From Macrostomum lignano (Eukaryota), in the NCBI GenBank assembly GCA_002269645.1, contig NIVC01000366.1:186001-250000 (forward strand): a DNA stretch of 64,000 nucleotides. The letters are read 5' to 3'. The notes under the pieces are model-generated. The model worked only from the letters and a program-made list of their open reading frames with translations. It did not search any database and was not told the origin of the DNA. Positions 8,375 to 47,410 of the stretch are shown here, in pieces (the stretch's first letter is position 1; every line of letters starts with the position of its first letter). The position numbers and the translations under genes were made by a program.

Positions 8375-10401
8375 TCAATCTGCGTGCTCATGCGCCGCGC
8401 CAGCCAATCGCGTCAATTTTACTAACAATCGCGCCAGACACAATCGAACGCGTGGAAATTTCGAAGCCAACCAAGGCAAAAGAAAGACAATAAAATATAA
8501 GCTGGACAATAGTAGCCAATAGTCGAATTGTTGAGTCAAAACTGTTGGCACGGGACCGGCGAAGTCTGATTCAGTCAGGCTGACATTTGGCAGCGGTTTG
8601 TGGCCAGTGAGATTGGCTAGCTCCGGTATCAGAGAGTCCAGCTTGCGCAAGCTGATATTCACGCAAGCGTATTCTCGATCCCCGTAAATTCGAATATGTG
8701 GCGCCATGCTGGTGGTGTAGTTGGCATAGAACGGGCTCACCTTGTCCGCCTCGGCCGCGAAAAAGTGCAGACCGGGGAACACTCTGTACAGATTGTATGC
8801 GGTATAAGGCAATGCGTCAGTTCTGGTGCTCTCTTTTAATGAGAGTGCCCTTTCCCTTCATTCTCCCCTCTCCCTTCATTCTCCCCTCTCCCTTCATTCT
8901 CCCCTCTCCCTTCATTCTCCCCTCTCCCTTCATTCTCCCCTCTCCCTTCATTCTCCCCTCTCCCTTCATTTCTCCCCTCTTCCTTCACTTCTCCCTTCTT
9001 CCTTCATTTCTCCCCTCTCCCTTCATTTCTCCCCTCTCCCTTCATTTCTCCCCTCTCCCTTCATTTCTCCCCTCTCCCTTCATTTCTCCCCTCTCCCTTC
9101 ATTTCTCCCCTCTCCCTTCATTTCTCCCCTCTTCCTTCATTTCTCCCCTCTCCCTTCATTTCTCCCCTCTCCCTTCATTTCTCCCCTCTCCCTTCATTTC
9201 TCCCCTCTCCCTTCATTTCTTCCCTCTCCCTTCATTTCTCCCCTCTCCCTTCATTTCTCCCCTCTTCCTTCACTTCTCCCCTCTTCCTTCACTTCTCCCC
9301 TCTTCCTTCACTTCTCCCCTCTTCCTTCATTTCTCCCCTCTTCCTTCATTTCTCTCCTCTCCCTTCACTTCTCCCCTCTCCCTTCATTTCTCCCCTCTCC
9401 CTTCATTTCTCCCTTCTTCTTTCCTTTCTCCCCTCTCCTTTCATTTTTCCCCTCTCCTTTCATTTTTTCCTCTTCCTTAATCTCCTTTCACTTTTCCTCT
9501 CTCCATTCATTCCTACCTGTCCCCTCTGCCTTTATTTCTCCCGGCTCTCTTCACTTCTCCCCTTCTCATCACATTTTTTCGCTGTCATTCTTTTATAACT
9601 CTACGTAGTTTCACTATGAGAGCCTTTTTCCATAGAATATTAATCAATCTAGATACTTATCATATCGCATCCTCACCTAGTCAGCGCATTGAAGTGTGGC
9701 GCCAGAGCGACAGAATATGGACAATAAGGCAGATAGTACAACAGCACGGCGCACTGTGTTGACTGATTGGTACTAATCTGTCCGCTGCCGTTGTCGCATT
9801 CGCTTCCGAGGCCGTCAACTGGCGCCGGCGCTGGTTTTGCAGTTAGCGCGGCGCGCAATTCAGCAAAATCTGATGAACTAATCAACGTAACAGAATTCTG
9901 CACAGTCGATTCGTTTGCTAATCGGGCTCGATTAGAACAATTAAAACGGCGCTTTGATCTGGCCGACAAATTTGGCGGCGGTTGAAACTGGCTAGCATTT
10001 GATGCTGATTGGATGCCGTTTGATAGCTGTCTAGAATTGCTTATATTTGATTGGTTGACTTCTGAGGACGATTCTGATTTACTCAATTCTGATTGGCTGG
10101 CATCTAATGGTGATTCTGAATCACTCGATTCTGATTGGCTGGCATCAGATGACGATTCTGACTTACTTGATTCTGATTGGCTAGCATCTAATGGCGATTC
10201 TGAAACACTCGACTCTGATTGGCTGACTACATCTGGGTACAGAGAAGCCTTATCATGTTCTTCTGATTCATATTTAGACTGTTCAACCGTGCTTGACAAT
10301 TTGCTGATTGCTTCTGCTTCTGCTTGACTTGAATGCAAAATTGAACCAAATTGGCATATTGCCAACAGCAATATAACACATACTGCTGTGTGGTCAAACA
10401 T
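8375..10401 (-). CDS. TXNDC15: Thioredoxin domain-containing protein 15 (exons 10401-9677, 8783-8375)
   Basis: Signal-peptide-like start MFDHTAVCVILLLAIC. The phase-2 splice gives LYYLPYCPYSVALAPHFNALTR/VFPGLHFFA..GPVPTVL..DYWLLLSSLYFIVF, matching TXNDC15 as I recall it ([48 protein letters not shown]). C-terminal TM helix. Confidence 0.88.
8850..9480. repeat. Polypyrimidine ~18-bp minisatellite (TTCTCCCCTCTCCCTTCA) in the TXNDC15 intron
   Basis: Direct inspection. Confidence 0.95.
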
Positions 10402-11521: not shown

Positions 11522-12829
11522 TGAGGGGCGTTCAATAAGTTTCTGGACCATAAGAGCCAGTGCACTCTAGGCTGCTCAAAATGTACTCACATGAAAAATG
11601 TACATCTCCTGAGATTTGACATAAAATATAAAGGTTATACAATAAACCTGAATCTCACAACTTCACTTCAAAGTCACCTATCACCTCCAACTTCAAGTAT
11701 CTATTATGGAACTGTCACACATCCACTGGAGAGCAATGATTTTTTACGACTACAAATGTGGTCTGAACCAGTTGCAAAGCTTAGAATGGCTTCGCCTAGC
11801 CTTCGGGGATACTGCACCCTTGAGAACAACCGTCTTTGACTAGTTCGCGGAATTTTGTCAGGGCCGAGTGTCGCTCAAAGATGAGGCTTGCAAAGGACGA
11901 CCCCCAAGTTTGACCACTCAGGAAACAGTGGCTGCAGTGCAGGCCCTGGTTGAGGAAGACCTGCGGTTGACAGTGCAACAGCTAGCCACTGCTGTGGGAA
12001 TATCATCGGGAAGCACCTCAACCATCCTACATGAAAGGCTTGGCCTCAGCAAGGTGTCCGCACGCTGGATGCCTCATCACCTGACCCAGGAGCAGAAACA
12101 GGCCTGGATCGATTGGTGCCATTCAATGCTTGAAAGATTCAACGGTGGAAGATCAACTAGCTCCTGGGACATTGTCAGTGGTGATGAGACCTGGGTATAC
12201 TGTTTTGACCCAGAGAGCAAGCAGCAGTCGCCCAGTGGACCCCCATTGGCAGCCCGCCACCTTCAAAGCTGGTGCAGTCACGAAGCGTCGCCAAGCAGAT
12301 GGTGGCTGTTTTTGTGGCTCGCAGCAGTCCCGTAGCCATGATTCTGCTAGTAACACAGCGGACAGTGACTGCGGGCTGGTATGTAACCGACTGTATGCCC
12401 CAGGTGCTGCAATCCATTTGCTAAGAAGCGCCCAAGGACTCGCCATCGCGGGTTGCTGCTCCACCAGGACAACACCCCGGCCCACATTGCGCGACTAACT
12501 GTGGAGTTCATAGAGCAGAATCACGTCCAACTGCTTCAGCACCCACCCTACAGCCCCAACTTGGCACCATGTGACTTCTTTGTGTTCCCACAAGTCAAGC
12601 GCCTGCTCAAGGGAGTCCGATTTACATCGCCGGAACAGGTCATTGAGGCCTTCCAAAGTCACCTGTTGACATCCTTCAGTCGGAGTGGGCTGGCTGCTTT
12701 GCTACTTGGTTTGAAAGGATGAGAAAGTGCATCGAAGCTGCTGGAGAGTACTTCAAAAAGGCCTGACATTTATCTACCCTCTGACACTTTTCATTTCTAT
12801 GCATCCGGAAACTTATTGAATGCCCCTTG
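11522..12829 (+). mobile_element. Decayed mariner transposon (irritans/Hsmar2-like TIRs), 1308 bp
   Basis: 26-bp imperfect TIRs TGAGGGGCGTTCAATAAGTTTCTGGA / TCCGGAAACTTATTGAATGCCCCTTG. TA duplications at 11520-11521 and 12830-12831. Transposase motifs SARWMPH, SGDETW and QDNTPAH..PYSPNLAPCD (D34D) are split by stops and frameshifts. Confidence 0.93.
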
Positions 12830-16705: not shown

Positions 16706-17347
16706 TCGACTTGAATCATAAATATTATTGAAATTTTTTAATTGTTTCAGTCACAAATGAAGCTGGATCGAAATTATGACGAGAAATCAAAACGCTAAAT
16801 GTGATGAAATATAGGAACAAAGAAAAGCACATGATTTTCCCAGACGTTCCCATGCACATGGACAATTATCCCTGACCCGCAGGCTTTTTAAAGCTAGCAA
16901 ATACAGTATGTGTGTGAAGTTTATAGTGTTTTTGCTGCTTATCATTTTAATATAAATATAATTAATTATATTATAATTAATATAATTGGGTACGCTCGAA
17001 TACACTGAACTTTTTGTACAATCCTTCCCAAATGTATCCCAAAAATGGTACATGTAATTGCATAGCTTATAATGGGATACTATACTATACAGGATTACTA
17101 GAGGATAAAAAGTCTATCCCCTATGAAAACGCCTTCTATAAAACTTTTTAGTTCCATGTTCGGCAGCATAGCTCTCATAGCATGATAATACAATGATATC
17201 ATCAGGTGAATTCTATTTAGCTAGCTATAGAGAAGAATTTATAATTGTGCATATGCGGTGAGCACTATGGAACAGATCTTGTTCAGCAGTGAGCAACAAG
17301 GTACTATAAGAGATTTACAATTTGCGTTGAGGGGGCGTGTGTGCATT

Positions 17348-18057
<710 letters not shown>

Positions 18058-18100
18058 GGCATGGATTTGAATTCTTCATACATATACGTCAGCTAACTGA

Positions 18101-18415
18101 GAGGCTTTTTGTAGCCTACTGGTTAGAGCGTCGGACTCACGACTGAAAGGTCGGGGATTCGATTCCCGATCCCACTCAGAACAATTTGTGTTCTTGAGCA
18201 GGACACTTAACTTGATCTGCATTGCTTCATTTCACCCAGCTGTAAAAATTGGTGCCAGCAGTAGCTGGGGTAATTGAGGCTGTGTGGCGACCCCTCAGGT
18301 CTAGAGTCCTTGGACTGAGCAGCCGTACGCAGCCTTCAGATGCGCCGCGCAATAGTTGCGGCTGAGCTGTCGGTTGCACATCTGGCCATTGGGCAGGTGT
18401 AATCAATTATTATTA
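18101..18415 (+). mobile_element. tRNA-derived SINE, apparently full length
   Basis: A box TAGCCTACTGGTTAGAGCG, B box GGATTCGATTCC, central GTGTTCTTGAGCAGGACACTTAAC..CACCCAGCTGTAAA domain and (ATT)n tail. A second copy lies at 27775-28003. Confidence 0.85.
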
Positions 18416-18956
18416 ATATTAATGATTAATGAACAAAATTTAAATTTACTGTCAATGTTTCCGTCTATTCAGATATTTTATAAATATAAAGGAAATATAG
18501 AGGAAACTCTCTGCAAGAATCAAATTTATTAATTTAAATCATTTATGTCCTTTTGTTTAATTTTTACGTGAAACGTTTGACATGATATGCATTTCCTCTA
18601 GACTGTGTGTATTTGCTTTTGTGCATGATGCTAGACTTTCATTTTGGTGGCATGGGCAAAGTGACATGTCCCTGATAATCAAATCTTCTTTCTAACGTGT
18701 TACTCCAAGTATCTGAGATGAAATTATAAATTTACTCTGTGTTAATTTTTCAATTTTCCAATAGATTTTCAAAGGTAATAAATAAAATAATATCTGACTA
18801 TATATGGTTTATTAGCATTTCATCGATTGCATTGAATATCTTAACGAACTTCCAACTGCAAGGGTATCCTTTTTTGCATCATTTAGAACGAAAAATTGAA
18901 GTTTTGAAACGTTTTGCAAGCAATTTTTTTTTCCAAATTTCTTCTCTTAATTTCAG

Positions 18957-19386
18957 AAAGTACGCCCAAGACTGCCCTAAACTCGACGAAGTCAAGACGA
19001 ATCAACTTTCGACTAATGATATTGAAAAGCTACCGGAGCAAACGACTGCCGTTCCTGCTAATCGAGCGGGCGATTACGTCACCAAGAACGTCTCTGTCGA
19101 ACTGCAACCAGGTGGCAACTTAACTCTTTCCACGGTCCCAATCTGGTTTTGGATTGTCATTACCATCGCAATTGCTGCCGGGATTATAACGATAGCGTTG
19201 ATTGTTTTAGTTTGCCTCAAAAAGAGACGCCCAACGAATTTGTATTTGAAAAGGGGTCAAACGGCACCTCTAGTTCGGCAATTAGAGGAAGGCTGCATTG
19301 GTAATTCTGTGCCCTCGATTGTTTTAGCGGCGGATGAAATTAGAGAGCGCAGTCGGATATCGAATGTCAACATATCGAATGAGTAG
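18957..19386 (+). CDS. TNFR-like receptor paralog 1, last exon only (end of CRD, stalk, TM, tail); first exon not located
   Basis: Acceptor TTTCAG at 18956. The exon starts (R)KYAQDCPKL, homologous in sequence and phase to (R)RYEFDCPQL of paralog 3. TM IWFWIVITIAIAAGIITIALIVLVC is followed by KKRR. Confidence 0.65.
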
Positions 19387-20854
19387 ATTAATCTAATCAC
19401 TTTACTCAATATAATATTTTCAACTTCTCTTCTAGGACGGTCTAGGACTGCGCGGTGTAGTTTTAATCCGTTACTACATTTATGCATTAGCGAAAAGTAT
19501 GTCTAGATATTATCTGACTGGCATAATTAAGTATACCCTTACCCCACGCTCTTACCCCATAGCTTTATATCACATGTACTAACATGCTGCACTTTTTATT
19601 ATTCAACCGAAATAAGATTGATTTTTTATTAATATACTTAACGAGATGTATTTAATGTTGTTTTGAACTCCGTACAATTTGATTAATTGATGTTTAACCA
19701 AGGAATCAGAAGCGTGATGATCAATTTTCGCTATGCTCGTACATATAAATAGTCATTCGCCAAAACTTTACCCAACTGCTAACACATACATGAGCAGAAT
19801 TTTCGTAACATTTTTCCAAATTTAACTTGCATTATGCTATTGAAATTCCGTACTCTAAACTTTGTTACTTTTTCTGGTGACTATATATTATTTTCCCAAC
19901 TACATCAGGGTACCATGCATGCCATGTGTGCTAAATTAGAAGAATGGCAATCTTTCCTGCCCAGATCAAATGCAATCTTGGATCTTGTGATGAAAAAAAT
20001 GATAATTTTCCTGTCTCTGCAGTACAGTTTTTTCAGGAAATAGGCCTACAAAAAACTATACAGGACCTATGAATTTTACGTTCTGTGTTATATTACAGTA
20101 GTAGCTACTTGAATTCGAAATCTGATGGATGCAACATTATGGTGGCCTATAAACTGTTTGGTGAAGGTCTCTATATACGTATTAGTGCTGTAATGTTTGC
20201 GCTTTGACTATAAGTCACACTACTATGTAGCTGAATGATGTACATGCCTGTACTGGTACGCAATTGGTAACTGTGCACATAGATTGATGGCTACATGTAC
20301 GAGTACAATCACTACCAGCTTAGAGTAGTTTATATTTCGAGTAATACGAGAGTAAATATGAGTGCACTGTGAAAAATGGGTGTGACTAGGCAGACACAGT
20401 CATATTTTAGCTTAGCTAGTACCGACAAATATGGAAACCGCAAGCACGTACAGTTATAGCATATATAGCCTATAATAATTAAAACTCGACGTACAGCTGC
20501 AAGCATACGTACTAGCAACGTTAAAGAAATTCTGGGTAAAGTACAATAATGAATATGAATGTGCAGTCACTGAATGTACACTGAATAGCCAAAAATAGCT
20601 CTTGAATCAGAGAAATATATTTTTAGCAAGGTGAGAAAAACCTATATAATTAGCTCTAAGCTAAGGATTGTCACACAGTACACGCAAAGGATTACCTGCC
20701 AGTCATATCAAACTTTACTAATTAAAAGCTCTAATAGCTAATTATTATTGAGCCTCGGTGAACCTTTATTAGACTTTGTTGATGCCTGACACACCTGTGG
20801 CCAACTCAGTCAACCAACCACCTTAGCTTAATTATCGTCTGAATATCGTCGACA

Positions 20855-21538
20855 ATGTCCGTACACACTGTGACAGCCGTCATATCGCTGACGCTTGCCA
20901 CAGTTGCTGCTGTGTCAGTCGAAAAACTTCAAATCCACTACTGTCCACCTGACGAGTTCGCCGACTCTATGGGCCACTGTCAGAGCTGCGACTGGTGCCG
21001 AAGAATTCAACCGGTGGATGGCGATGCCGAGCAAGTTTCGCTTGAACATCTGCACAGACAGGACATCTGCGATCGGTTTGGCGCGCTCTGCTTCACCTCG
21101 CAGATGAGCACCGCTGTTCAGAAGCTGGACGCGAAGCTTGAAGCATTTCAAACGACGCCAAACAGCATCAAATCGTCGGACCTAATTGCAACACGAGATG
21201 CGCAGAAGAAGATCGCGGAATCTGTTTTCACTGAATCAAATTCATCATCAATAGACTCCACAAAACATAGTGAGGCTCGTCCTTGGTCCAAGCTTGCTTC
21301 AATCATTGCAGGAGCCGCTTCAGCGGTAGGTCTGGCCACAATCGTGTTGATTCTAATCCTTTTGCTCCGGAGACGAAGGTCAGCCCAAAAACGACGTCAG
21401 AAAGCGTTGCTACATGATTCACTGGACACCGCTAAGAGTACAGAGGAAGGACTCGGTGGTTCGAGGAACTCAATTGAGCGGACACGGGAGTGCATACAGG
21501 ACAGAAATAGGGATACAGGGCGAGTCATTGCAGTTTAA
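20855..21538 (+). CDS. TNFR-like single-CRD type I membrane protein, paralog 2 (intronless, 227 aa)
   Basis: Signal peptide; CPPDEFADSMGHCQSCDWC..LHRQDICDRFGALC (6 Cys); Ser/Thr stalk; TM followed by RRRR; tail contains STEE; no death domain. Confidence 0.75.
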   Translation: MSVHTVTAVISLTLATVAAVSVEKLQIHYCPPDEFADSMGHCQSCDWCRRIQPVDGDAEQVSLEHLHRQDICDRFGALCFTSQMSTAVQKLDAKLEAFQTTPNSIKSSDLIATRDAQKKIAESVFTESNSSSIDSTKHSEARPWSKLASIIAGAASAVGLATIVLILILLLRRRRSAQKRRQKALLHDSLDTAKSTEEGLGGSRNSIERTRECIQDRNRDTGRVIAV

Positions 21539-21555
21539 TGTGTGGTTATGAGGGG

Positions 21556-21815
21556 CAGGGGTGTCGCTACCGGGGGGACATTGGGACATGTCCCCCACCA
21601 AAAGTTATGGGGGGACATACAAATGCTTTTTCCCACCGCCACACCGTGATGGAAATCAATAGTTTTTGCTTCAGGGCGCCAAAATATAGCGCCTGTGGCG
21701 CCAAAAAGGAGTTGCTATACAAAATTACCACGATTCCAAAAATTATGTAGGAATTTAGTCATGTAAAATTCTTAACTTAGTCCCGCTCACCATAGAATCC
21801 ATGGCGACGCACCTG
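21556..21815. mobile_element. Possible hAT-type MITE just after the paralog 2 stop codon
   Basis: Imperfect TIRs CAGGGGTGTCGCTA / TGGCGACGCACCTG; no 8-bp TSD found. Confidence 0.4.
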
Positions 21816-23247
21816 CATGCTATCAAATCAGTTGTTTATTTGATTAATCATTAAGTGCTCCATTCCTCATCCCTCTTATCTATTTTTAGTGGCTTGAAAT
21901 TTCCATCATTGGTAAATCTTGAATTATGTAGCTGTAGGGACTTCTTATAGTTAAAATTGAATCCATTACCCATACACCAAGTGAATTATTATCGTTCAAT
22001 TTATATATATTTTTTGTATTCATTGCACAATAATTTTTTTGTTTTGCTGTGTTTCTGTTTGCTAAACAAGAATTACTTGCAGATAGCTACTATAGAGGCC
22101 CTAATCCGTCGCTAATTTTCATTTAGTAAAAATTGAATATCGAATCAGAATCATTAACTGTACATATGCATGTATATCCGTTGATTCTATTACATGTGCA
22201 TGTAACATGTACATGGCTCCTATAATGATCGAACTTTCATTTGTCATGCAAGCAATCAAAAGCTGTGTCAAAGAAAAATTATTTTGTTTAACAAAAATCG
22301 AGTTTGAGGTTGCTTTTTCTAACAGTAGCTAGCTAAGAACATTTTTCCTTGTACATTAATTAGATTGCTTATCATATTATCAATAATCGACTCTCATATG
22401 TAAGCTATAAGTTCAGTTTGAAATTTTCGCGTTGTACCATTTTAGCGGAGGAAATATGTCGATTGAAATAAACTTTTTATTAGCAGGCTGCTTTTATAGC
22501 TTGTATTTCGGTAAATTTTCTTCAAAATTCTACAACCTTGACTTCCAAGGAAAATTTATTCATGAACTTAATTAATTATATTAACCGAAATGAAACCGAA
22601 ATGTGGTGCTAAAATGACTGCTATCAATATCTTTCCCAAAAATATATAGGAATTTGCTATTTGCCATTTATTTGTGGAATTATTGGCTTTGTCCCCCCCC
22701 CTCACCATAAAATACACGGTGGCCTGGTGACCATTGTTAAAGCCATTATCAACGAAATTTTCCATCTGTTTTTTTTAACTTTAACGTTCTCTTACTACTA
22801 ACTGCCTACTTGAAGGTTAAGCCAAATACGGAGAATCTCCAGTTGACATGGACAATTTAAATTTTGGTTCAGTTCCATGTTGCTTGACAAAAATGCGCGA
22901 GCAACTTTTTTATCCAACCCCCCCCCCCCGAATGCAAGATCCACGTACACGGTAGGTTACTCGTGTAAATGTACACTATATTTTCAAATGTACAGAAGTG
23001 AAGGTATGTCTTTTGACTACATTCAAACTGTGCTCATCCAGCTCCAGTTCTATATTTAGAAGCTATATATGTAACGAGCGTACATGTATATGACGTCTTA
23101 AGCCACGTACAGCAAATATAGCATATAAAAATAGGCATTAAGGCTTTATTTGAAAAGCCAACCGGCCTTTTGACTAGCCAAACTTTATTTGAAGTGCTAT
23201 ACTGCAGCCTTGAATCTGGTTCCAAATCAGCTACATACAATAGAATA

Positions 23248-24957
23248 ATGAGACCAATGGTTTCGCATCTAATTTTTGGAGTGACAATTGTAATTTCAAT
23301 TAACTATTATGTCGCAATAGCAACTACAATGACAAAAAATCAAACGGTTCGGTGCAAGGAGGGAGATTTTGCTAACTTTCACGGAGAGTGCATAAACTGC
23401 TCCTGGTGCAACAGCGAGTCCCTGGAGGGTCAAGAGCGTCTTCATCGACAGTCTATTTGCAGGTAAACACTAATTATTTATTCTAAATTTAGTAAGCCAA
23501 CAGGGACTATACTTTTAAGTCACTAAAATACGAGCTATATGTGCATGCAAAGCGTGCCGTTAGTCAACTGTTTAAACATTAAATTTTGCTTTATAAATGC
23601 AAGTTTCAAACCGAAGAAGTCTGAAAATTATATATTATTAAAGAGCGGCAATGTAAGCATGTTTGTCAGCAAGATTCAGATGATTATTATTGTTATTTTT
23701 TATATCTATGACCACTGGTTATGTGTTTAGAGCTCTTACGTCTATGGCCAAGATAAATGACTGTTGCCGACTAGCTACTGGTCTGTCTATGTCTATGGCC
23801 AAGACATATAATCGTGCGTGTAAAATGACTGCCGACTGCTGGTCTGTCTATGTCTATGGCCAAGACATAAAATCGTGCGTGTAAAATGACTGCCGACTGC
23901 TGGTCTGTCTATGTCTATGGCCAAGTAGCTGTGGGCAAAAATAGTAGTGAGCTAAACACGTTTTGACAAAACACATACTTTCTTCATTTGCTAATCCGGA
24001 TGTCCAAAAAGGTGATATACATGTATTTGAGCTAGAATTTTGTGCTAGAGAAACAGCATGATTGAATTGTACTTGAATTTTTTGTGGCGACCCCTTTTGA
24101 ATTACGAGCTAGTTGTGTAATTTGAAGACTCCTTTTATCGAATGCATTATCAAGGCATCGGTCTATAAACACGTGTTACAGAAGAAAACTTTAGCAGTTC
24201 AGCTATACTAAATTTTCACCTACCCAAGACACTGACATTAGCTATATATGACGTTGCCCATAAGTTATTTCTTAATTTCGAATAACAAACAAACCAGAAA
24301 AACTTAGTTAAGCTACACTACAGTAAAATTTTATCTAAACGGAATTTAGATAACAAGCAAGCGTTTCTGACTCATGCACTTAGTATAATCTAAAGCTACG
24401 AACTATAAAGAAAAACAGTAACAATTTGAGCATGTTGCGTACTAATTTTGTATAGAGATCCAGGACTTAAATTTTTTAAATAAAACGTGCTTATATTTAC
24501 GTAATTCCTAACTTTCTTTAGACGGTACGAATTTGACTGTCCTCAGCTGCAGCGAGAGCTGAGTACGAAGCAGACTGAATCGGTGAGAACTACTACAAGC
24601 CCGTCAACTGCACAAACTGACTACCAATATTCACATGTCACAACAAGCCCATCACCGTCACCATCCGACGTGACTGACAATGGCCCAGCCGTCCACTCAG
24701 TTCCCAATGCTTCGCCTCCGGTGTGGGCTTGGGCTGTCGGCTTCAGCGTACTTGTTGTTGTCGGTTTAGCAGCGGCTTTGATCTTCGGTTGTACTCGGCG
24801 AAAAAAAAATTTCAAACGCCGGGATTCAAGAAGAAACGAGGAACAGACACAGCAGACTGAGCCGTTTGTTGGCAACCGCATGCAACCGGCGAACTCATCG
24901 ATTTCGATTGAAATGACGGCCAGAGAGCAGACATGCAGAAATAATCGGTCTTTGTAA
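23248..24957 (+). CDS. TNFR-like single-CRD type I membrane protein, paralog 3 (exons 23248-23462, 24522-24957; 216 aa)
   Basis: Signal peptide; CKEGDFANFHGECINCSWC..LHRQSIC/RRYEFDC across a phase-2 GT-AG intron; Thr/Ser/Pro stalk; TM VWAWAVGFSVLVVVGLAAALIFGC followed by RRKK. Confidence 0.78.
23740..23925. repeat. 61-bp tandem repeat, about 3 copies, in the paralog 3 intron
   Basis: GTCTATGGCCAAG recurs at 23791, 23852 and 23913. Confidence 0.9.
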
Positions 24958-26039
24958 ATTTTATTTGCTTAAAATTCTCTCTGTTATTGATTAATTAATA
25001 TTACTGTATTTTTGTTTAAAATCATTTTTGTTATTCATTCAATCGTTTTCGTGATGGTTATCAATCATCATTTTATACTGTGTACTCCTAACGTATGATT
25101 AAATACGAGCGTGTCTCTTTAACAGAATGCATGTAATTATAAATATTGATTCTCATATTTCCATGCAATTACCTCGATTATAGAGAACAACGAGTCTATT
25201 GCACTCATGCGCCTATTTTTTATTATATACATGTAATCGTATATTTCTTGTATCCATAAGCTGTCATAACTAGCAGCAGTAGTCATTTTTGAGCAAACTT
25301 CCGCTAAATGTGTCAGATGCGATAATAAAGAGTCCCCTACTTTTGAATCAATCTATAATACATAAATTTGTTCAACTGCTCTCAAAACGATTAAGCGCCA
25401 GACATACATGATTATTTGACAATTTCGGCTTTGTAGTACATCTCGTGCAGAATAATTTGGTCTTTTTTGCTCGCTCTCATCATTTTGAAATGGCAGAAAT
25501 TGAGAAACGTCTCAATTTGCAACGGTATACGAACTATATACATGTAAGTTTGCATGAAAAATCATGTACCTAACTAATAGTACAATGCCTGGCTGGCATT
25601 CAGTAGCTTGTGAAAGCTAAGCTACACCTGTGACTGTGCAAATATCTAATTGCATACTATATAGTACAGGTACATACGTTTTAAAACACGTTCATACAGA
25701 CGCCAGAAAATGTTTTATGGCTTATCATCAGTCCGTTTCAATAGTACAAAATCAGTTTATTTCGTAGAAAGGAATTAATATTTGTCTACAATTTTATTTA
25801 GACAACAAATTAATTATGAATAGATATACTTTAATAAAAGGTGAAACTTTTTGGGACAAATATGAAAAAATGAATAACACGCAGTTTACTGCGTCGCGTA
25901 CTCAAATCGCATCGAATCAGACTGATATTAAAAAATCATGAATCAAAATGAAAGGTACAAAATGAGGAAAGTGAGAAAACAAAAATCCTCAGGTGAGGAG
26001 AGAAGATAAATTAGCCTTAGAGAAAAGCGAGCGAAGTAA

Positions 26040-27110
26040 TGAGAAAGAGGACAGAGAGATGGAGATAGAGTCTAGATGGAGAATAGGGCTGTGAGAGAAT
26101 CTAGAGATGAAAAAGGATCAAGAAACGAAAAAGGAAAGGCAGAGGGAAGGGCAAGGTGAATAGAGGAAAGGAACAAGGTGGGCAGAAGAAAGGCAGAGGG
26201 TACGTAGAGGTAGAGAGAATGTGGGGGATCGGAGAGAGAGGGAGAGATGGGGAGAGGGAGAAATGGGTTAGAGAGAAGGAGAGATGGGGTGTGAGGGAGA
26301 GGTGCTAAGAGAGATGGGAAGAGAGGGAGAGATGGGGGACAGAGAAGAAGAGATGGGGAGGGAGGGAGAGAGAAGGAGGAAGAGACAGAGAGAGAGGGAG
26401 AGAAAGAGAAAAACGGGGGAAGACAGAGAGAGAAATGGGGGGAGAGGGAGAGATAGGGAGAGAGAGGGGGAGGGATGGGGAGGGAGGGAGAGATGGGGAG
26501 GGAGGGAGAGATGGGGAGAGACAGAGAGGGGGAGGGAGAGATGGGAAGAGAGGGATGGATGGGAAGAGATGGGGAGGGAGGGAGAGATGGGGAGGGAGGG
26601 AGAGATGGGGAGGGAGGGAGAGATGGGGAGGGAGGGAGAGATGGGGAGGGAGGGAGAGATGGGGAGAGACGGAGAGATGGGGAGGGAGGGAGAGATGGGG
26701 AGAGACAGAGAGAGGGAGGGAGGGAGAGATGGGGAGAGGGGGGAACGGGGGAGACAGGGGGAGAAATGAGGAAGAGGAAGAAATGGGAAGAGAGGCAGGG
26801 ATGGGGAGAGAGATTGGGAAGGAGGGAGGAAGGGATGGGAACTGAGGGAGGGATGGGGAGAGAGATTGGGAAGGAGGGAGGAAGGGATGGGAACTGAGGG
26901 AGGGATGGGAAGAGAGAAGGGAAAATCGGGGGGGCAGAGGGAAAAATGGGATAGAGGGGGGATGAGAGAGATGGGGAGGGAGGGAGAAATGAGGAGAGAG
27001 AGAGGGAGAGATGGGAAGAGACGGAGAGGTGGGGAGAGAGGGAACGGGTGGGTAGAGAGACAGGAGGATATGGATTGGGGAGATGGTGGGGCAGATGGGG
27101 AGAGGAGTGC
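26040..27110. repeat. Polypurine low-complexity tract (GGGAGAGATGGGGA-like units)
   Basis: Almost purely G/A on the + strand. Confidence 0.95.
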
Positions 27111-27774
27111 ATGGGGTGCTACAAGGGAAGAGAGGCTTGTAAGAATGGTGAGGTGTGATAGGAAGGTTGTGATGCGGAAAGAGAAAGTTAGCTAGGCCCC
27201 TTTTATACATCATGCGATCTCGAGAATTTATATCAAATTTCTGTTCTCTGGATGATTAGCAAAAATTAATCTCAGGGTACAGGAAATCTTATCCTCTGAT
27301 TAATGCAGAATGCAGGTAGTAATAGCTCACGGTATATATTCCCAAAAATGTTCCATTTTACAAGGTTTTGGAGTTGAAAATGTATATTCTAAATTAAAAA
27401 ATCTTTTTTTCTACCAGTACCAGTATATGTTTAAGCGCTTCAATTTTGATAAATCTAATAAATCTACGAGCGTAGATGAAAGACTTTCTATGAGCTATAT
27501 GTATTAGCTAAATGATGACAAGTTGATTCTGCAGTTAGACTCCATTGTCACGCACGTACAATGCCTAAAACGCTAACAATTATCACTGATTCTGAAGTCA
27601 CCAATTAATAAAAGAAACTTAAATTTCGGTTTTTACCTTGATTTAGGTTTATCTCAGCTATTATATATCCATATTTCGTTGAGGACTAAATCTTTGAACT
27701 CAAACAGGTAAAGTGCAACTCTTGCTTGCGGGTGACAGATGTTCGAAGCTTTACTAGATTGCTGTAAAAAAAAA

Positions 27775-28003
27775 ATAATTGATTACACCTGCCCCAATTC
27801 GGCCAGTAGTGCAACCGAAAGCTCAGCCGCAGCTATTGCGCGGCGCATCTGAAGGCTGCGTACGGCTGTTCAGTCCAAGGACTGGGGGGTCGCCACACGC
27901 ACCCTCAATTACGAGCACCCCAGCTAATTCTGGCACCCATTTTACAGCAGGGTGAACTGAATCAATGCAGAGTTAAAGTGTCTTGCTCAAGGACACAAAA
28001 GAT
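27775..28003 (-). mobile_element. 5'-truncated copy of the same SINE
   Basis: Reverse complement of about 18185-18410; lacks the tRNA head. Flanked by an imperfect TSD AGATTGCTGTAA / AGATTACTGCAA. Confidence 0.85.
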
Positions 28004-29480: not shown

Positions 29481-29737
29481 AGACACACTTCAAAGTCAAC
29501 TGTCTTTAACTGTCAACGGAAAAAATAAGCCTTGAGGAGAAAGGTTTTGGTAGCTAGTATTTTTTGTCATTAGCTCGTAAAAGGTCGGGCGTTCACCTTA
29601 CGGTAGAGTACTTGTTGCGATCTACCAGCGATTTTTGTTTTTGAGTCAGACCTCTGATGGAGTCAACTGCCGTGCAGTTTTGCCGAATCGAGACTTTTCG
29701 AAGGGCTCGTCAAGCATTTTCTCCGAATAATTACCGA

Positions 29738-31960
29738 GAGAGGGGTGGAGAGGAAGGGAGAGGGGTGGAGAGGAAGGGAGAGGGGTGGAGAGGAAAGAAG
29801 GGGGTGGAGAGGAAGGAAAGGGTGGAGAGGAAGGGAGAGGAAGGGAGAGGAAGGGAGAGGAAGGAAGAGGGGTGGAGAGGAAGGGAGAGGGGTTGAGAGG
29901 AAGGGAGAGGAAGGAAGAGGGGTGGAGAGGAAGGGAGAGGGATTGAGAGGAAGGGAGAGGAAGGGAGAGGGGTGGAGAGGAAGGGAAAAAAAGGGAGAGG
30001 GGTGGAGAGGAAAGAAGAAGGGTGAAGAAGAAGGGAGAGGAAGGGAGAGAGGGGTGGAGAGGAAGGGAGAGAGAGTGGAGAGGAAGGGAGAGAGGGGTGG
30101 AGAGGAAGGGAGAGGAAGTAAGAGGAAGGGAGAGGGGTGGAGAGGAAGGAAGAGGAAGGGAGAGGAAGGGAGAATAAGGGAGAGGGGTGAAGAGGAAAGA
30201 AGAGGGGTGGAGAGGAAGGGAGAGGGCTGGAGAGGAAGGGAGAGGGGTGGAGAGGAAGGGAGAGGGGTGGAGAGGAAAGAAGGGGGTGGAGAGGAAGGAA
30301 TGGGTGGAGAGGAAGGGAGAGGAGTGGAGAGGAAGGGAGAGGGGTGGAGAGGAAGGGAGAGGAAGGGAGAGGAAGGGAGAGGAAGGAAGAGGGGTGGAGA
30401 GGAAGGCAGAGGGGTTGAGAGGAAGGGAGAGGAAGGAAGAGGGGTGGAGAGGAAGGGAGAGGGATTGAGAGGAAGGGAGAGGAAGGGAGAGGGGTGGAGA
30501 GGAAGGGAGAGAGGGGTGGAGAGGAAGGGAGAGAGGGTGGAGAGGAAGGGAGAGAGGGGTGGAGAGGAAGGGAGAGGAAGTAAGAGGAAGGGAGAGGGGT
30601 GGAGAGGAAGGGAGAGGAAGGGAGAGGAAGGGAGAGGAAGGAAGAGGGGTGGAGAGGAAGGGAGAGGGGTTGAGAGGAAGGGAGAGGAAGGAAGAGGGGT
30701 GGAGAGGAAGGGGTGGAGGAAGGGAGAGGGAGAGGGTGGAGAGGAAGGGAGAGGGAGAGAGGAAGAGAGAGGAAGGGAGAGGAGAGGAAGAGAATAAGGG
30801 AGAGGGGTGGAGAGGAAAGAAGAAGGGTGAAGAAGAAGGGAGAGGAAGGGAGAGAGGGGTGGAGAGGAAGGGAGAGAGGGTGGAGAGGAAGGGAGAGAGG
30901 GGTGGAGAGGAAGGGAGAGGAAGGGAGAGGAAGGGAGAGGGGGTGGAGAGGAAGGGAGAGGGGGAGAGGAAGGGAGAGGAAGGAAGAGGGGTGGAGAGGA
31001 AGGGAGAGAGGAAGGGAGAGGAAGGTTGAGAGGAAGGGAGAGGAAGGAAGAGGGGTGAGAGAGGAAGGGAAGAAGAGGAAGGGACAGAAGGAAGGGAGAA
31101 GTAAGGAGAAAGGTAAGAAAATGAAAAGAGAGAGGAAAGAAGAAGGGTGGAGAAGAAGAGGAAGAGAGGGGTGGAGAGGAAGGGAGAGGGGTGGAGAGGA
31201 AGGGAGAGAGGGGTGGAGAGGAAGGGAGAGGAAGGGAGAGGGGTTGAGAGGAAGGGAGAGGGGTGGAGAGGAAGGGAGAGAGGGGTGGAGAGGAAGGGAG
31301 AGGAAGGGAGAGGGGTTGAGAGGAAGGGAGAGGAAGGAAGAGGGGTGGAGAGGAAGGGACAGAAGGAAGGGAGAAGTAAGGAGAAAGGTAAGAAAATGAA
31401 AAGAGAGAGGAAAGAAGAAGGGTGGAGAAGAAGGGAGAGGAAGGAAGAGGGGTTGAGAGGAAGGGAGAGGGGTGGAGAGGAAGGGAGAGGAAGGAAGAGG
31501 GGTGGAGAGGAAGGGACAGAAGGAAGGGAGAAGTAAGGAGAAAGGTAAGAAAATGAAAAGAGAGAGGAAGAAGAGGAAGGGAGAGAAGGGGGCGGAGAGG
31601 AAGGGAGAATGGGTAGAAAAAAGGGAGAGAAGAGAAGGAGAGAGGGTGGAGAGGAAGGGATAGGAAAAAGGGAGATTAGAAATTGAAGTGAGAGGGAGAA
31701 GAGGAAGGGAGAGAGGGGAGAAAAGGGCAGAAGAGACGCAAAGAGAGGGAGGACGAGAAAAGCAATATGGCCGGAGGGGAGCAGGTTGATTGAAAGATGA
31801 AGATTGGGTAAGAGAGAGAGAAGAAATTATAATGTAATGAGAGACTGAGAGAGAGAGACCAGGGGAGGAGAAAAAGAGAAAAGGAGAAGAGAGGGATGAG
31901 ACGGTTGAAAGGGAAGGAGAGATGGGAGCGGAGAGAGGGAAGATGAGAGAGGGGATCTGA
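29738..31960. repeat. 2.2-kb polypurine minisatellite (GAGAGGAAGG / GGGGTGGAGAGGAAGGGA units)
   Basis: Direct inspection; contains internal higher-order duplications. Confidence 0.97.
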
Positions 31961-32237
31961 GAAGATACAGAAATGAAAATAAGAGAGGAGTGAGAAATAA
32001 GGGTAGTGAGAGGCACTGGAGCAGTGATCTGTTAGAGCAGGAACAGTGTTAATTTCTCAATGTCTAATTGTCTTGCTGTTTTACAACTTCCAACATCAGT
32101 AGCTTTAAGGGGTCAATTTACGTCACCTGTGTCCTATCTACTTATCTAAACTCCTCTAACCCAGCTAATTAATTAAAGCATACAAACAACAGCAAACCCT
32201 GCACCTAAGCATGAAAAAGACGCAGTGAGTCTGCATG

Positions 32238-34110
32238 CTACTCGAACCTCACGGGCGCCTCGGCTCGAATCACCTTCCGACAGATGGGGCATGTCTGCAG
32301 GTTGGCAGAGCAGCGGCTGCAGCAGCACAGGTGACCGCAGTCCAGCAGAATTACGTTAATCCGATGGACCATGCACACCTTGCAGGTGCGCCAGTCCGTC
32401 TCGGGCGACTCCTCCGGCTCTCCAAACGCTGACGAGCTTCGCAGACGGTGCAGCTCGGCCTCTCTGAATGTTTCGATGTCCATGGAACGCACAGTCAGAG
32501 CGTCGTGTTGGCTGACAACGGCCGCCAGCAGCTGTTCAGAAGTCGCGAAGTCGTCACCCTCAAACATCAGCCGCATCTCCATTGCTGTGCGAACCTCGGT
32601 AGCTGAGAATCCCAGACGGATGGCCATTCGAGCTGACGGAACGTCGGATCGTGCTCGGATCTCTCTCGACTCGATTCGGTACCTGACTCCCAGGTTTCCA
32701 GAGTACGACATTTTCACCTGTGATTGTTGCTCATCCTGCCGTCCATGATTACGGCTCGAGCTCAGGATCTCTGAAAAGCGGGCCACAACGTCAGGCGCCA
32801 CGAACTGTCGAACCCGTCTCACGAACGCGGCGCCTCGACTGCTCAGCAGGTGGCCGCACCTCGGAGACCACGCGGCGTGGGCGATCGACGCGTTGCCGAG
32901 CAGCTGGGAGCCTGCAACGGACAGCCGCAGGTTACACGCGAAGCAGATCAGCAAGTTGAACGTCCCGGCCGTCTGCAGGAAGAACCCCGCTGACGCGAAC
33001 TGATCTGCCGGCTCAAACAGCTCGATGTTCTCGAGAGTCCTCAGTCGGTCGCTCTGACGGACGAAGCTCGGATGCTCGATCGGCAACCGAGACGCCTCGA
33101 GCTCGAGCATCTCGAGTGCCTGCACCGCTCGAGGCTCCGCGGCTGACCGCAGCGTCTGCGGCGGAGGCAGCGGCGTCTGGGAAGCTGCAGCGAGAATTTC
33201 CGGTTCCGACGGTCTCTGCTGACGTCCCGCGCTTCCGTCCGACATCGCCAGCGACCGCCACTCGTCCTCCGTCCGGGGCTCCGTCACAACCTCCTCCGAC
33301 GTCTCAGAGGCCTCGCTGCACTGCTCTGACTGCGACACGCCGTCCATCTCGAGGTCCGGCTTGTTGCCGACGTCCATCCCCAGCACGAACGGACACGTGG
33401 GGAACTGCCTGGCGTGCAGCCGCATCGGCGACTCTCCTTCAGCGAGGCTGCCGGACTCCAGCGCTCCCTGGCAGAAGGCGCACCGAACTCGGCCATCTGT
33501 GGCCGATTGGAACAGCCCCGCCGATGCCATCCACCTCGCCGTGTCAGCAGTCACCGATGGGCCGAAGCTGAGAGCTCTGGCCGACTCCGACATCATCTCC
33601 CTGACTGCCCCGCTGCCCTCGGCGAAGCTGAGCTGCTGGGGCACGCGGCTGTCGCTGCTGGCTCCAGTGTAGTAGCGGAGCAGCTTGCAGATCGCTGAGC
33701 TGACCGCATGACCTGCTGACCCGCTTGCTTGAGGAGTTTTCAGAAACTTTGTTGAAAAATATTGTAGTGCCATGCCAAGCATTGCGAGGTACGGAATGTT
33801 TAAGGCTGACTGAAACCCTGAAATCCCTAGATTTTGGATATGATTGATTATCTGAGTGTAACAAAGCGTCATTGCGTTATTTCCTCCCTCCAGTTTCTTG
33901 GCAACTTTTTGTTTTCCTTCTGTTTCCAATGAAATCATGTTTTCGAACAGAGCTCGGGTTTTATTGGTAAACCATTTAAAAGCATTCCACGCCGTTCTTC
34001 TGAAGCTGACCTTCTTGTCCTCCTGATCTGGCGTTTCCGACGACCTTGATCCAGAAATCGAGTTTTGAGCTGCCTGTTCTGCAAGTGGTTGTGGAGATTG
34101 TTGAATAAAC
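32238..34110 (-). CDS. Inhibitor of apoptosis protein, copy 1 (2 BIR + UBA + RING). The frame is open from a putative acceptor at 34110; first ATG at 33938 gives 566 aa
   Basis: BIR CAFC-x18-H-ARQFPT-C; BIR RLRTL..ASAGF..CFAC-x18-H-AAWSPR-C; UBA-like AIRLGFS..; IAP-type RING CKVCMVHRINVILLDCGHLCCCSRCSANLQTCPICR. Confidence 0.9.
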
Positions 34111-35205: not shown

Positions 35206-36204
35206 CAAACTTCATTGGTCAATTTGTCCATCAGGATCCGAGTGGGAAGGGGGAATGGGAGTGAATGAACAACCATAGACTATTTTATTTTACGCTCATA
35301 GACTCGTTTGTTTTCTAAAATGATATCACCGGTAAATTGCTTTATTGTCAATTTCAAACTATGACGGGTCATTGCTTGAATTCAATTGCCTTAGCGTAAA
35401 TTACCATAGACATTTTGAACAATGGAGCCCGCTCAGAGCTAGGTAGACTGTCTTTATTATACAATATCCAGAAGAGAACTATATACGAGGTGCCGGGTCT
35501 CACTAGTAAATCGCCCAGACACCATCATCTCGAGACTAGCCAACATGGCTGAGTAGCAAATATCAATCAGAACCCACAAAGATAGTTTTGAACTAAAAAG
35601 AGTCGAGACCTCTACAAAGATACTTGTCACTTCTACTACAACTTCATATGGTACTAATCAACCGAAAAGAATGTCCTAGACATTTTCAATCCAGAATTTA
35701 AGCGCACCCTGTCACAGTTTAGATTAGCCAAACAATTAACTGGCCTGCGAAACAATGAGGACTGTGAGACCAAAGACCCCTTACGAGAATTGGACCTACC
35801 CAAAGTGCCATGTGCTGGGGGGGGGGGGGGGTAGAATGTGAAGTTCACTTCCCATACAAGTGCAGATGGAACTTTTAGTGCCTCCTTCGGCTTCAGGGAT
35901 CAATTAGAACAGGAAATCTCAGTCAAAGTTTCTAATACTAAACCTTACTGCAAATGTTTAAGTATTTTACGCACTTAGTTTTAATAAAAATAATCGTTGT
36001 CTCAAGATAGCTAAAGTTTATGTGATTTTCATAAGCTGCTAAGGTCAGAGTTTTTTATAAAGGGAAAAATGCGTACATGTGTTCAAAGACTTGTCTTGAT
36101 GAGCTTTCCTAAATTTATATACTTCGCAATTTAAGCAAGGACCACTGGGTCTTTCGCTTTTTGGTTCTTGGATTTAGGACTGAGATTTTAACACTGGCGC
36201 CACC

Positions 36205-36910
36205 TGTCTCTTCAGGTGGGCGCCCCTGTCTCTTCGGTGGACGCCCCTGTCTCTTCGGCGGACGCCCCTGTCTCTTCGGTGGACGCCCCTGTCTCTTAGG
36301 TGGACGCTCCTGTTTCTTAGGTGGACATCCCTGTTTCTTAGGTGGACGCTCCTGTTTCTTAGGTGGACGCTCCTGTTTCTTAGGTGGACGCCCCTGTTTC
36401 TTAGGTGGACGCCCCTGTCTCTTAGGTGGACGCCCCTGTCTCTTAGGTGGACGCTCCTGTTTCTTAGGTGGACGCCCCTGTTTCTTAGGTGGACGCTCCT
36501 GTTTCTTAGGTGGACGCTCCTGTTTCTTAGGTGGACGCCCCTGTTTCTTAGGTGGACGCCCCTGTTTCTTAGGTGGACGCCCCTGTTTCTTCGGTGGACG
36601 CCCCTGTCTCTTCGGTGGACGCCCCTGTTTCTTAGGTGGACGCCCCTGTCTCTTAGGTGGACGCTCCTGTTTCTTAGGTGGACGCCCCTGTTTCTTAGGT
36701 GGACGCTCCTGTTTCTTAGGTGGACGCCCCTGTTTCTTAGGTGGACGCCCCTGTTTCTTAGGTGGACGCCCCTGTTTCTTAGGTGGACGCCCCTGTTTCT
36801 TAGGTGGACGCCCCTGTTTCTTAGGTGGACGCCCCTGTTTCTTAGGTGGACGCTCCTGTCTCTTAGGTGGACGCCCCTGTCTCTTAGGTGGACGCCCCTC
36901 TCTCTTAGCT
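36205..36910. repeat. 21-bp minisatellite, about 33 copies (GGTGGACGCCCCTGTTTCTTA)
   Basis: Direct inspection. Confidence 0.97.
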
Positions 36911-38315
36911 GGGCAAAAAGGCGGCACTGTATACTGATGTAAATTTTGCTTAAATTAGATAAAATGTGCTGGCTCACCTGTATAACCATTGTTGCTCATT
37001 TTTCATGTTTTTCTTTCTATGGGTAACGTTTCTAGTAATATAGAGGAAGTGGATTCAAAAATGTAACATAAGACTTTTTAATAGTTAACTATGAAAGCAG
37101 CTAGCGAAATGCGCTCGTACCTTGTAAACTGCTGCCCCCAAAAATGCGTACACTGGTAGGAATGTACAAGTTGCGTACATTTTGCCTCGAGAATTGTTTG
37201 TAGGTCAGTTGTTTGGAATTATTGCAATAGTTTCTACAGCTAATACACATGGAATATATGGAAAGGGAACTCGCTAGAGTCTAGACGTACACTCTTAATG
37301 AGTAATGACCTTAGATGTCATTACAACGGCTAATATACTCGTATAAAAAGCCCTGGCTTGTTTAAAAAACCTTTACATCAAGCCGAGTGTTTTGAAAAAG
37401 TAACAAAATCTTGTTTTAAGTGTCTGACTTGTTATTGAAAAGATCAGCTTGCGAATTCTTCACTGCTGTTGAAAGCCTTGTTTGCTAAAGTAGAAATAAT
37501 GAAACTTTGACCTCAGTCTGCTCGAAGAAGACGCGAAGACGAGAAGACTCGAACGATTTGTGTCTGCTGACAGATATGATGTCAGAGTGCTAAGTGTCTA
37601 CCAGTACAATGACTGCTACAATCGTAGCTTTGATTTTCTACAGATGGGAGCCAATAATCAATTTGACCATGAACTGCAGTGTACTCATATCTAATTTCAT
37701 TTTATTAGCTAAATTTAATGCTTCTATTTACAATACAAACTAACCAGATTAACTAGATATATTTACAAGCTGACTTGGAAAGGAGTATAGAGCTTATTTA
37801 CTGAACAATTTCAATGAAATTGAAATAATCAAGTAAAGATAAAAATCCTCTCAAACAAGAACAACTAAAGTGAAGTAAAGTCGCTTCTTCCTCGTGTAAA
37901 GTAGATCCAGAATTGTAGTCCTTTAAGCATAGCTTTCAGCTACAAGAGCCTAGAGCCTTTCTTTTGCTGCGTACAAAAAATGTACATTTAGCCTGTGTAA
38001 AATTCTATTTATAGCTTGCTAAAAATTTAGTATCTGCGTTAGTTCCATGTTCATGTTCCAATGATAATCAGAGATAGCATAGATCTCCTTACCAGTAACT
38101 TAACTTAAGTTATATGCTACTGCATAGATATGCATAGTAGCTTAAGCCAAAAGCCAAAAGCCAAAATCCTGAATCTTCGGCTAAGCGTACTACTTTTTAG
38201 TACAAATACAAAGTACAAGTACAAATCACTGAATCAAGGAGTTCTATAACTAGCATCTGGAGTGCAAACGAGCTTTCGGAAAAGGTCAAACTATAAGTGA
38301 AAGTGACCAACAAAT

Positions 38316-46863: not shown

Positions 46864-47410
46864 GTCTCGTTAACTGTCGAAATCGGGCACTGTAAGCTAC
46901 CGATGATGGTGGAGAGCGGAGCCAGCTGCAGTATCATGAGCATCAAAACATTCCGACAGCTGGGCGATCAGCGAATTCGCGCCACCAAGGTAAAAGTTCA
47001 TGCAAATGGAACGCCCGAACCTCTCAAAATCATAGGTACTGCGAGCTTAGGCATTAGGTACCGCTAGTGCAACTGTGCCCTTTCCCTTTCTGCAACTGCG
47101 ACGGTCTAACGATACTCGGACGCCAAGCTGCCTTTGAGCTAGGAATCCTGCATATCCAGCGGCGCCAATTCTCAGCCAGACAGAAGATGTTAACTCCAAC
47201 GTCAAGGCAGCCGAGGGGTATGAAAGCCAGAACATTTAGGACATCTTGCATCAGCACAAAAAAGTATTTGACGGAATTGGATGTATCAAAGACGTGCAGG
47301 TCGAAGTTCAGCTTTCGGACAACATGGCCCCAGTGTGTCAATCCGCCAGCCCGAGTTGCGGCGCATCTCCGAGAATCTGTCATCAAGGAGCTGAAAGACT
47401 TAGAAAGGCA

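Follow-up and report, generated by a model that had tools for sequence, protein, structure and literature searches.

A tandem gene cluster in Macrostomum lignano encoding small single-pass membrane proteins whose cysteine-rich domain weakly resembles those of tumor necrosis factor receptors

The 64-kb stretch of contig NIVC01000366.1 from the free-living flatworm Macrostomum lignano analyzed here, hereafter the window, carries a tandem cluster of plus-strand genes for small proteins with one cysteine-rich domain (CRD). The cluster is a small family of single-pass membrane proteins confined to M. lignano in current databases. An earlier sequence-only reading of this DNA had described three single-CRD proteins resembling tumor necrosis factor (TNF) receptors (TNFRs), a count that holds at a sister locus and fails in the window. 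The window contains two intact genes (paralogs 2 and 3) and one remnant truncated at its 5' end (paralog 1), which lacks exon 1; three intact genes are present only at the sister locus. The features of the cluster, in which TM denotes the transmembrane segment and ORF an open reading frame, are as follows.

16971..17347, plus strand: upstream flank of paralog 1, collinear with positions 5649-6026 of the sister locus (L001) and 91% identical to them by BLASTN
17348..18057, no strand assigned: (TCTG)n microsatellite, intronic in the intact sister gene and adjoining the deletion here
18957..19386, plus strand: paralog 1 remnant, the equivalent of exon 2, with KYAQDC (Cys6), stalk, W-x-W, TM, KKRR, tail and a TAG stop codon
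20855..21538, plus strand: paralog 2, a single-exon ORF of 227 residues
23248..23462, plus strand: paralog 3 exon 1, with signal peptide and Cys1-Cys5 (LHRQSIC), ending in a phase-2 donor (AG/GTAAAC)
23463..24521, plus strand: paralog 3 intron, GT-AG, phase 2, acceptor TTTAG/A
24522..24957, plus strand: paralog 3 exon 2, with RYEFDC (Cys6), stalk, VWAW, TM, RRKK and tail

Locus L002 (NIVC01000366.1:199173-220957, assembly Mlig_3_7) was base-for-base identical to positions 13173-34957 of the window. Three annotated genes (BOX15_Mlig028822g1, Mlig005414g1 and Mlig025889g1), whose order and strand match those in the window, make up the cluster at the sister locus, L001 (NIVC01000059.1:675152-695841). 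The products of window paralog 3 and of the three sister-locus genes are referred to as P0001-P0004; P0001 (A0A267H1Q3; PAA92231.1) belongs to the sister locus and is 85% identical to the paralog 2 protein, and P0004 is the sister paralog 1. The GenBank annotation of Mlig_3_7 consists of transcript-derived models only (PMC5730564) and holds models for the three sister-locus genes and for window paralog 3 (BOX15_Mlig023886g1). These four genes therefore have RNA support, and the family is at least partly transcribed. The GenBank annotation of the contig includes no model for window paralog 2, and an exact look-up of its protein returned no record; an exact-sequence look-up of P0002 in assembly collections also returned none.

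The two intact genes of the window encode proteins of the same layout. As the sequence-only reading had proposed, a signal peptide, the Cys pattern, a Ser/Thr-rich stalk, a TM segment, a basic stop-transfer cluster and a short tail could be read from both ORFs, and the LHRQxIC motif is common to both. In particular, paralog 2 has Cys residues at positions 30, 42, 45, 48, 72 and 79 (spacings 11, 2, 2, 23 and 6), and the C30-C79 domain is followed by a 66-residue stalk, a TM segment at 146-174, an RRRR cluster and a 53-residue tail with an STEE motif. The spliced product of paralog 3 is 216 residues long with Cys residues at 36, 48, 51, 54, 71 and 78 (spacings 11, 2, 2, 16 and 6), and its exon 2 encodes a stalk with 47% Ser, Thr or Pro and a 51-residue tail with NSSISIE. 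Both proteins have an N-terminal hydrophobic segment, a single TM segment with a Kyte-Doolittle peak of 2.6 and a basic stop-transfer cluster, with stalks of 57-66 residues (33-47% Ser/Thr/Pro) and tails of 51-53 residues. All full-length copies from the two loci carried an N-terminal hydrophobic segment and one TM segment followed by an Arg/Lys cluster, the arrangement of single-pass proteins.

The spliced paralog 3 model was 100% identical to UniRef100_A0A1I8HSU8. BOX15_Mlig023886g1 spans positions 23173-24957 of the window, and its GenBank coding sequence matched our model, whose coordinates differ by a base or two from the start that the sequence-only reading had implied. Within the intron of paralog 3, a unit of about 58 bp is repeated in tandem at ~23760-23925, in about three copies as judged by eye. 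Paralogs 1 and 3 share an intron after Cys5 that paralog 2 is missing at both duplicated loci, which dates the loss of this intron, or retroposition of the gene, to a time before the genome duplication.

To judge from pairwise BLASTP, the three copies are truly paralogous: paralogs 2 and 3 matched with E=9e-13, paralogs 3 and 1 with E=3e-15, and paralogs 2 and 1 with E=9e-7 over the CRD alone. In an alignment of the five full-length domains, the six Cys residues and F, A, G, W, H, R and I were all invariant, and a tail motif, N-S-x-x-S-I, was common to all three paralogs. All five full-length ORFs across the two loci were intact. Six-frame regular-expression and tblastn searches found no CRD in the 64-kb window beyond those of paralogs 2 and 3, so the domain, present at two sites only, is not a chance pattern. 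An exhaustive HMMER search of 1.84 billion representative proteins with a profile hidden Markov model (HMM) of the family recovered three M. lignano clusters (P0002, P0001 and P0004) and detected no relatives in other flatworms or animals in that library; in the other five matches (E 2e-7 to 5e-4), the aligned part of the profile was limited to the stalk and TM segment.

The ratio of nonsynonymous to synonymous substitution rates (dN/dS) was estimated by the Nei-Gojobori method from the homeologs of the window and the sister locus. For paralog 2, the ratio was 0.57 overall, 0.11 in the CRD and about 1 in the TM segment and tail. This difference (0.11 vs 0.6-1.0 in the rest of the protein) indicates that the paralog 2 CRD is under purifying selection. 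For paralog 3, the overall ratio was 0.98 on ~39 differences, and the domain ratio is uninformative with 4 differences; for paralog 1 exon 2, it was 0.32 (dS 0.52). Since overall identity among the paralogs is ~25% and dN/dS outside the CRD is about 1, the earlier description of the family as rapidly diverging was fair.

The remnant of paralog 1 begins past Cys5, at an acceptor (tttcag/A) located at 18955-18956, and its KYAQDC corresponds to RYEFDC of paralog 3. It shares the exon-2 start, the splice phase and the W-x-W motif before the TM segment with paralog 3, which agrees with what had been claimed for it, and the intron of the intact sister gene falls at the position and in the phase of the paralog 3 intron. 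Exon 2 contains no Met, the open frame upstream of the acceptor contains no ATG, and six-frame regular-expression and tblastn searches of the window found no exon 1. We considered an alternative exon 1 for the window copy and ruled it out on the lack of an ATG, of a Met and of a third CRD in these searches. The sister protein P0004 is complete, with 231 residues, the pattern C-x11-C-x2-C-x2-C-x18-C-x6-C, an FHRVKIC motif and an exon 1 that includes the signal peptide; the remnant is 63% identical to its residues 85-231. A segment of 464 bp at L001 6027-6490, which comprises the promoter region, exon 1 and the start of the intron, has no counterpart in the window, where the junction lies at 17347/17348. 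The 5' end of window paralog 1 is therefore missing, which could reflect a true microsatellite-associated deletion or an assembly collapse.

Additionally, divergence between the duplicated loci was uneven. Exon 2 of paralog 1 was 78% identical to L001 7429..7874 with a dS of 0.52, the flank and paralog 2 were 91-92% identical with a dS of 0.12, and exon 1 of paralog 3 was 96% identical. A dead gene is expected to raise dN and not dS, and the uneven divergence hints at gene conversion or at copies with different histories. A dispersed repeat resembling a short interspersed nuclear element, with a tRNA-like 5' part, was found in the intron remnant of paralog 1 (~18090..18420), at ~27780..27955 and at L001 17753..17913; ARAGORN called no tRNA on the element in the paralog 1 intron.

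The cluster probably arose by local tandem duplication, with loss of the intron in paralog 2, and the whole cluster would later have been duplicated along with the genome. In the copy of the window, paralog 1 would then have lost its promoter and exon 1 to become a dead remnant.

The proposed relationship to TNFRs was examined at the sequence level. UniRef names all copies found there (P0001-P0004) 'TNFR-Cys domain-containing protein', an automatic label that implies a match to an automatic rule. When the domains were scanned in isolation, TNFR_c6 (PF00020) ranked first or joint first among Pfam profiles for paralog 2 (E=0.015, 16.1 bits) and paralog 3 (E=0.018, 15.9 bits), while the full-length proteins matched it with E=0.086-2.9; the isolated domain of paralog 2 also matched TNFR_ELAPOR1_6th. 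The sequence-only reading had likened the first half of the domain to CRD1 of TROY and XEDAR, and the spacing indeed fits paralog 2 exactly. With unverified sequences of TROY and XEDAR, the family HMM gave scores of 6-8 bits only: 7.9 bits for TROY CRD1 (0 of 300 shuffles with fixed Cys positions scored as well) and 5.8 bits for XEDAR (1 of 300). The TNFR likeness is weak and confined to the first half of the domain, and that to CRD1 of TROY and XEDAR, though slight, is not random.

A TNFR CRD is a module of ~40 residues with six Cys, in which an A1 hairpin (C1-C2) is followed by C3-C5 and C4-C6 disulfides. Canonical CRDs have an A1-B2 arrangement; those of BCMA and TACI are A1-D2, with a hairpin and then helices. 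Six Cys residues are invariant in the domain of the present family, where the C-x11-C is A1-like and a CxxCxxC signature is present. The AlphaFold model of full-length paralog 2 had a predicted local distance difference test (pLDDT) score of 52 and was not used for fold searches. The model of the paralog 3 domain alone reached a pLDDT of 70 (core 76-79), and in it a hairpin (13-15/21-23) is followed by two helices (24-28 and 35-46). When this model was searched against the PDB with Foldseek, BCMA appeared at ranks 7 and 26 (1xu2_T, E=1.7, TMt 0.47; 1oqd_K, E=3.5); a search of a viral library gave nothing significant. The structural check thus returned a hairpin-and-helices model and no significant match to a TNFR fold.

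On these grounds, we lean slightly towards the view that the cluster is a Macrostomum-restricted tandem family of small type I proteins that are highly divergent, single-CRD members of the TNFR superfamily. They would probably represent a divergent variant in the style of BCMA, Fn14 and Wengen. The label, the top or joint-top rank of TNFR_c6, the likeness to TROY and XEDAR CRD1, the place of BCMA among the Foldseek matches, the TNF ligands encoded by M. lignano and an architecture shared with BCMA, Fn14 and Wengen speak for the TNFR subfamily that had been proposed.

Several results weigh against this assignment. The TNFR_c6 matches of paralogs 2 and 3 are sub-threshold, at about half of the gathering score of 29.4 bits, and align profile positions 1-25 of 39, which cover Cys1-Cys4 only; paralog 1 (P0004) had no TNFR_c6 match in the Pfam scan. 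Searching PDB sequences with the family profile returned no TNFR at E<=10, and the PDB-verified sequences of BCMA (4zfo_F) and EDAR (7x9g_C) scored no better than shuffles with fixed Cys positions. Neither the C4-C5 (16-23) nor the C5-C6 (6) spacing agrees with the canonical TNFR pattern, and both presumably lie outside PS00652 as well. Furthermore, the second half of the domain is predicted to be helical (AlphaFold, pLDDT 70), unlike the canonical B2 module, and the best Foldseek match in the PDB had E=1.2, with repeats of the low-density lipoprotein (LDL) receptor class A type (LDL-A) in the lead. The homeolog dN/dS of paralog 3 is about 1, the TRAF2-type tail motif is limited to paralog 2 and could be due to chance, and ligand binding and signaling are something that we purely infer.

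The tails were scanned as well. Pfam detected no death domain or other domain in the tails of 41-55 residues, so these proteins were correctly described as death-domain-less. A TRAF2-type motif, [PSAT]x[QE]E, is present in paralog 2 only, as STEE, and is kept in both homeologs; no TRAF6 motif was found in the tails.

If the family does consist of divergent TNFRs, a mechanism can be proposed by analogy with BCMA, Fn14, Wengen and Grindelwald. Each protein would comprise a signal peptide, one six-Cys domain of ~50-57 residues, a Ser/Thr/Pro-rich and probably O-glycosylated stalk, a TM helix and a tail of 41-55 residues. The first half of the domain, C-x3-[EDQ]-F-A-x4-G-x-C-x2-C-x2-C, would form an A1-type β-hairpin module with the CxxCxxC signature, and the second half, [LF]HRxxIC-x6-C, predicted to be helical, would stand in for the canonical B2 module, comparable to the helical D2 of BCMA and TACI. 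The hairpin may dock in the inter-protomer groove of the worm's own trimeric TNF/Eiger-like ligand, which would then cluster three receptors, and the death-domain-less tail may recruit a TRAF-type adaptor through STEE (paralog 2) and/or the family-wide NSxxSI motif.

We compared the family with known receptors to place this proposal. BCMA (TNFRSF17), TACI CRD2 and BAFF-R, all of vertebrates, resemble it in being type I or III proteins that combine one small CRD with a short tail lacking a death domain; in their case, the tail binds TRAF. BCMA also has an A1 hairpin followed by a helical second module, as is predicted here, and its motif C-x3-E-Y-F-D-S-L-L-H-x-C-x2-C, checked against 4zfo_F, resembles C-PPD-E-F-A-D-S-M-G-H-C-QS-C of paralog 2. 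In contrast, there was no significant sequence or structure match to BCMA, whose spacing is C-x12-C-x2-C-x3-C-x8-C-x3-C compared with x11, x2, x2, x16-23 and x6 in the family, and the family differs from it in its long, mucin-like stalk and in a signal peptide that looks cleavable. A DxL ligand-contact motif of the BCMA type was rejected as a family feature, as paralog 2 has only D-S-M and paralogs 1 and 3 have not conserved the motif. CRD1 of TROY, XEDAR and EDAR shares the first-half pattern C-x3-E-[FY]-x-[DN]-x2-G-x-C-x2-C-x2-C with paralog 2 (for TROY and XEDAR, again in unverified sequences), whereas EDAR (7x9g_C) has an x12 spacing and these receptors have three CRDs with canonical B2 second halves.

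Wengen and Grindelwald of Drosophila are Eiger receptors with one CRD and a short, death-domain-less tail that acts through TRAF/JNK (10.1101/2024.07.27.603686); by description, the present family is like them in its one CRD, missing death domain and short tail. A 2026 preprint that used custom HMMs counted 16 Wengen-like receptors, 1 Grindelwald-like receptor and 6 Eiger-like ligands in M. lignano, with the receptors not described (10.1101/2024.07.27.603686), and 4-10 TNF ligands have been reported for the species (PMC7519573). Bertevello et al. (2020) reported one NGFR-like TNFR with four CRDs per flatworm species and no diversification (PMC7519573), and the present family was not recovered by their BLAST/HMMER strategy. 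That SmTNFR/NGFR-like receptor shares the phylum and the presumed pathway with the family but differs from it in its four CRDs and, in M. lignano, its death domain. The sequence-only reading had suggested that the subfamily is possibly undescribed. No searchable paper mentions the four gene identifiers, but the proteins already carry the automatic TNFR label; the family is thus automatically labelled but undescribed in the literature.

Among the alternatives, the one that fares best is that these are orphan, taxon-restricted membrane proteins with mucin-like stalks, whose disulfide-rich head converged on the TNFR CxxCxxC spacing and binds a non-TNF partner, for example in adhesion, microbial or mating-related contacts. 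We regard it as a doubtful though serious explanation. It would account for the restriction of HMMER matches to three M. lignano clusters, for the lack of significant matches in Pfam, PDB sequences and Foldseek, for a helical second half unlike B2, and for fast evolution outside the CRD. Nevertheless, TNFR is the sole recurring database signal (TNFR_c6, TNFR_ELAPOR1_6th and the UniRef/PROSITE label), the likeness to the unverified TROY and XEDAR sequences exceeds what Cys spacing would give, and the architecture is the same as that of known single-CRD TNFRs.

It is improbable that the genes are functionless, decaying duplicates left by polyploidy. The missing exon 1 of window paralog 1, the dN/dS of 0.98 between paralog 3 homeologs and the missing transcript-based model of window paralog 2 would fit such decay; the paralog 3 ratio, however, comes with only ~4 substitutions in the CRD, which makes it uninformative there. 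Decay is also at odds with five intact full-length ORFs in which every Cys and seven other domain residues are invariant, with ratios of 0.11 in the paralog 2 CRD and 0.32 in paralog 1 exon 2, and with transcript-derived models for four copies.

A degenerate LDL-A (complement-type) repeat is a very improbable identity for the head domain and was dropped: the leading Foldseek matches were LDL-A modules of VLDLR, LRP2 and LDLR (E 1.2-2, probability <=0.25), the sole PDB match of the family profile was a complement-type module of LRP1 (E=4.5), and module LA5 of LDLR scored 4.4 bits against the family HMM with 9 of 300 shuffles as good, but none of these matches is significant, the isolated domains had no Ldl_recept_a (PF00057) match in Pfam at E<=10, and the D-x-S-D-E calcium cage, with its acidic cluster, and the LDL-A position of Cys2 are absent from the domain alignment.

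The remainder of the window contains genes resembling those of inhibitor of apoptosis proteins (IAPs), mobile elements and repeats.

32238..33938, minus strand: IAP-like gene downstream of the cluster
42767..45543, minus strand: long terminal repeat retrotransposon pol gene, with reverse transcriptase at 44383..45543 and RNase H and integrase at 42767..44455, beside the truncated IAP copy
47054..48238, minus strand: IAP-like gene downstream of the cluster
51830..53488, plus strand: IAP-like gene downstream of the cluster
62187..63266, plus strand: mariner/Mos1-type transposase, an intact-looking ORF of 359 residues with HTH_48 and Transposase_1

Two of the three IAP-like ORFs, with 566 and 552 residues, encode a full BIR domain and a C3HC4 RING, and one gene encodes a BIR only and is apparently truncated beside the retroelement. 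The receptor cluster lies ~7 kb from the BIR-RING genes. IAPs take part in the TNFR signaling complexes of other animals, and the linkage here may or may not be meaningful. A shorter fragment containing HTH_32 was found at 11868..12335. We also observed coding-looking, low-complexity tandem repeats at 8700..9600, 26000..27200, 29700..32000 and 36100..36950, whose translations are rich in GEGW/RERK, SPSL or PPKKQGR and whose strand asymmetry is extreme, with a GC skew of up to 0.96; these repeats are probably satellites and not genes.

A bolder interpretation, which we put forward only tentatively and consider rather unlikely as a whole, is that the family represents a new CRD type in the TNFR superfamily. 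In this type, an A1 hairpin would be combined with the lineage-specific, helical LHRQxIC-x6-C half and would have co-evolved with a private expansion of TNF/Eiger ligands in Macrostomum, in a TNF-receptor/IAP neighborhood serving cell death or immunity in this regenerating worm. If true, it would contradict the published picture of a single, undiversified flatworm TNFR.

Corals, molluscs and annelids are already known to have lineage-specific expansions of TNFRs, and such expansions are common in invertebrates. The practical value of the present family is modest, as it is found in one species in current databases and its kinship with TNFRs is unproven. The worm itself, M. lignano, is a transgenic regeneration model that is tractable by RNA interference and has TNF ligands of its own. 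If the proteins are real TNF receptors, the repertoire of this worm is diversified and is not the single NGFR-like receptor of the 2020 report. Single-CRD receptors represent the minimal ligand-binding unit, and a new combination of modules within that unit would inform how the CRDs of TNFRs evolved.

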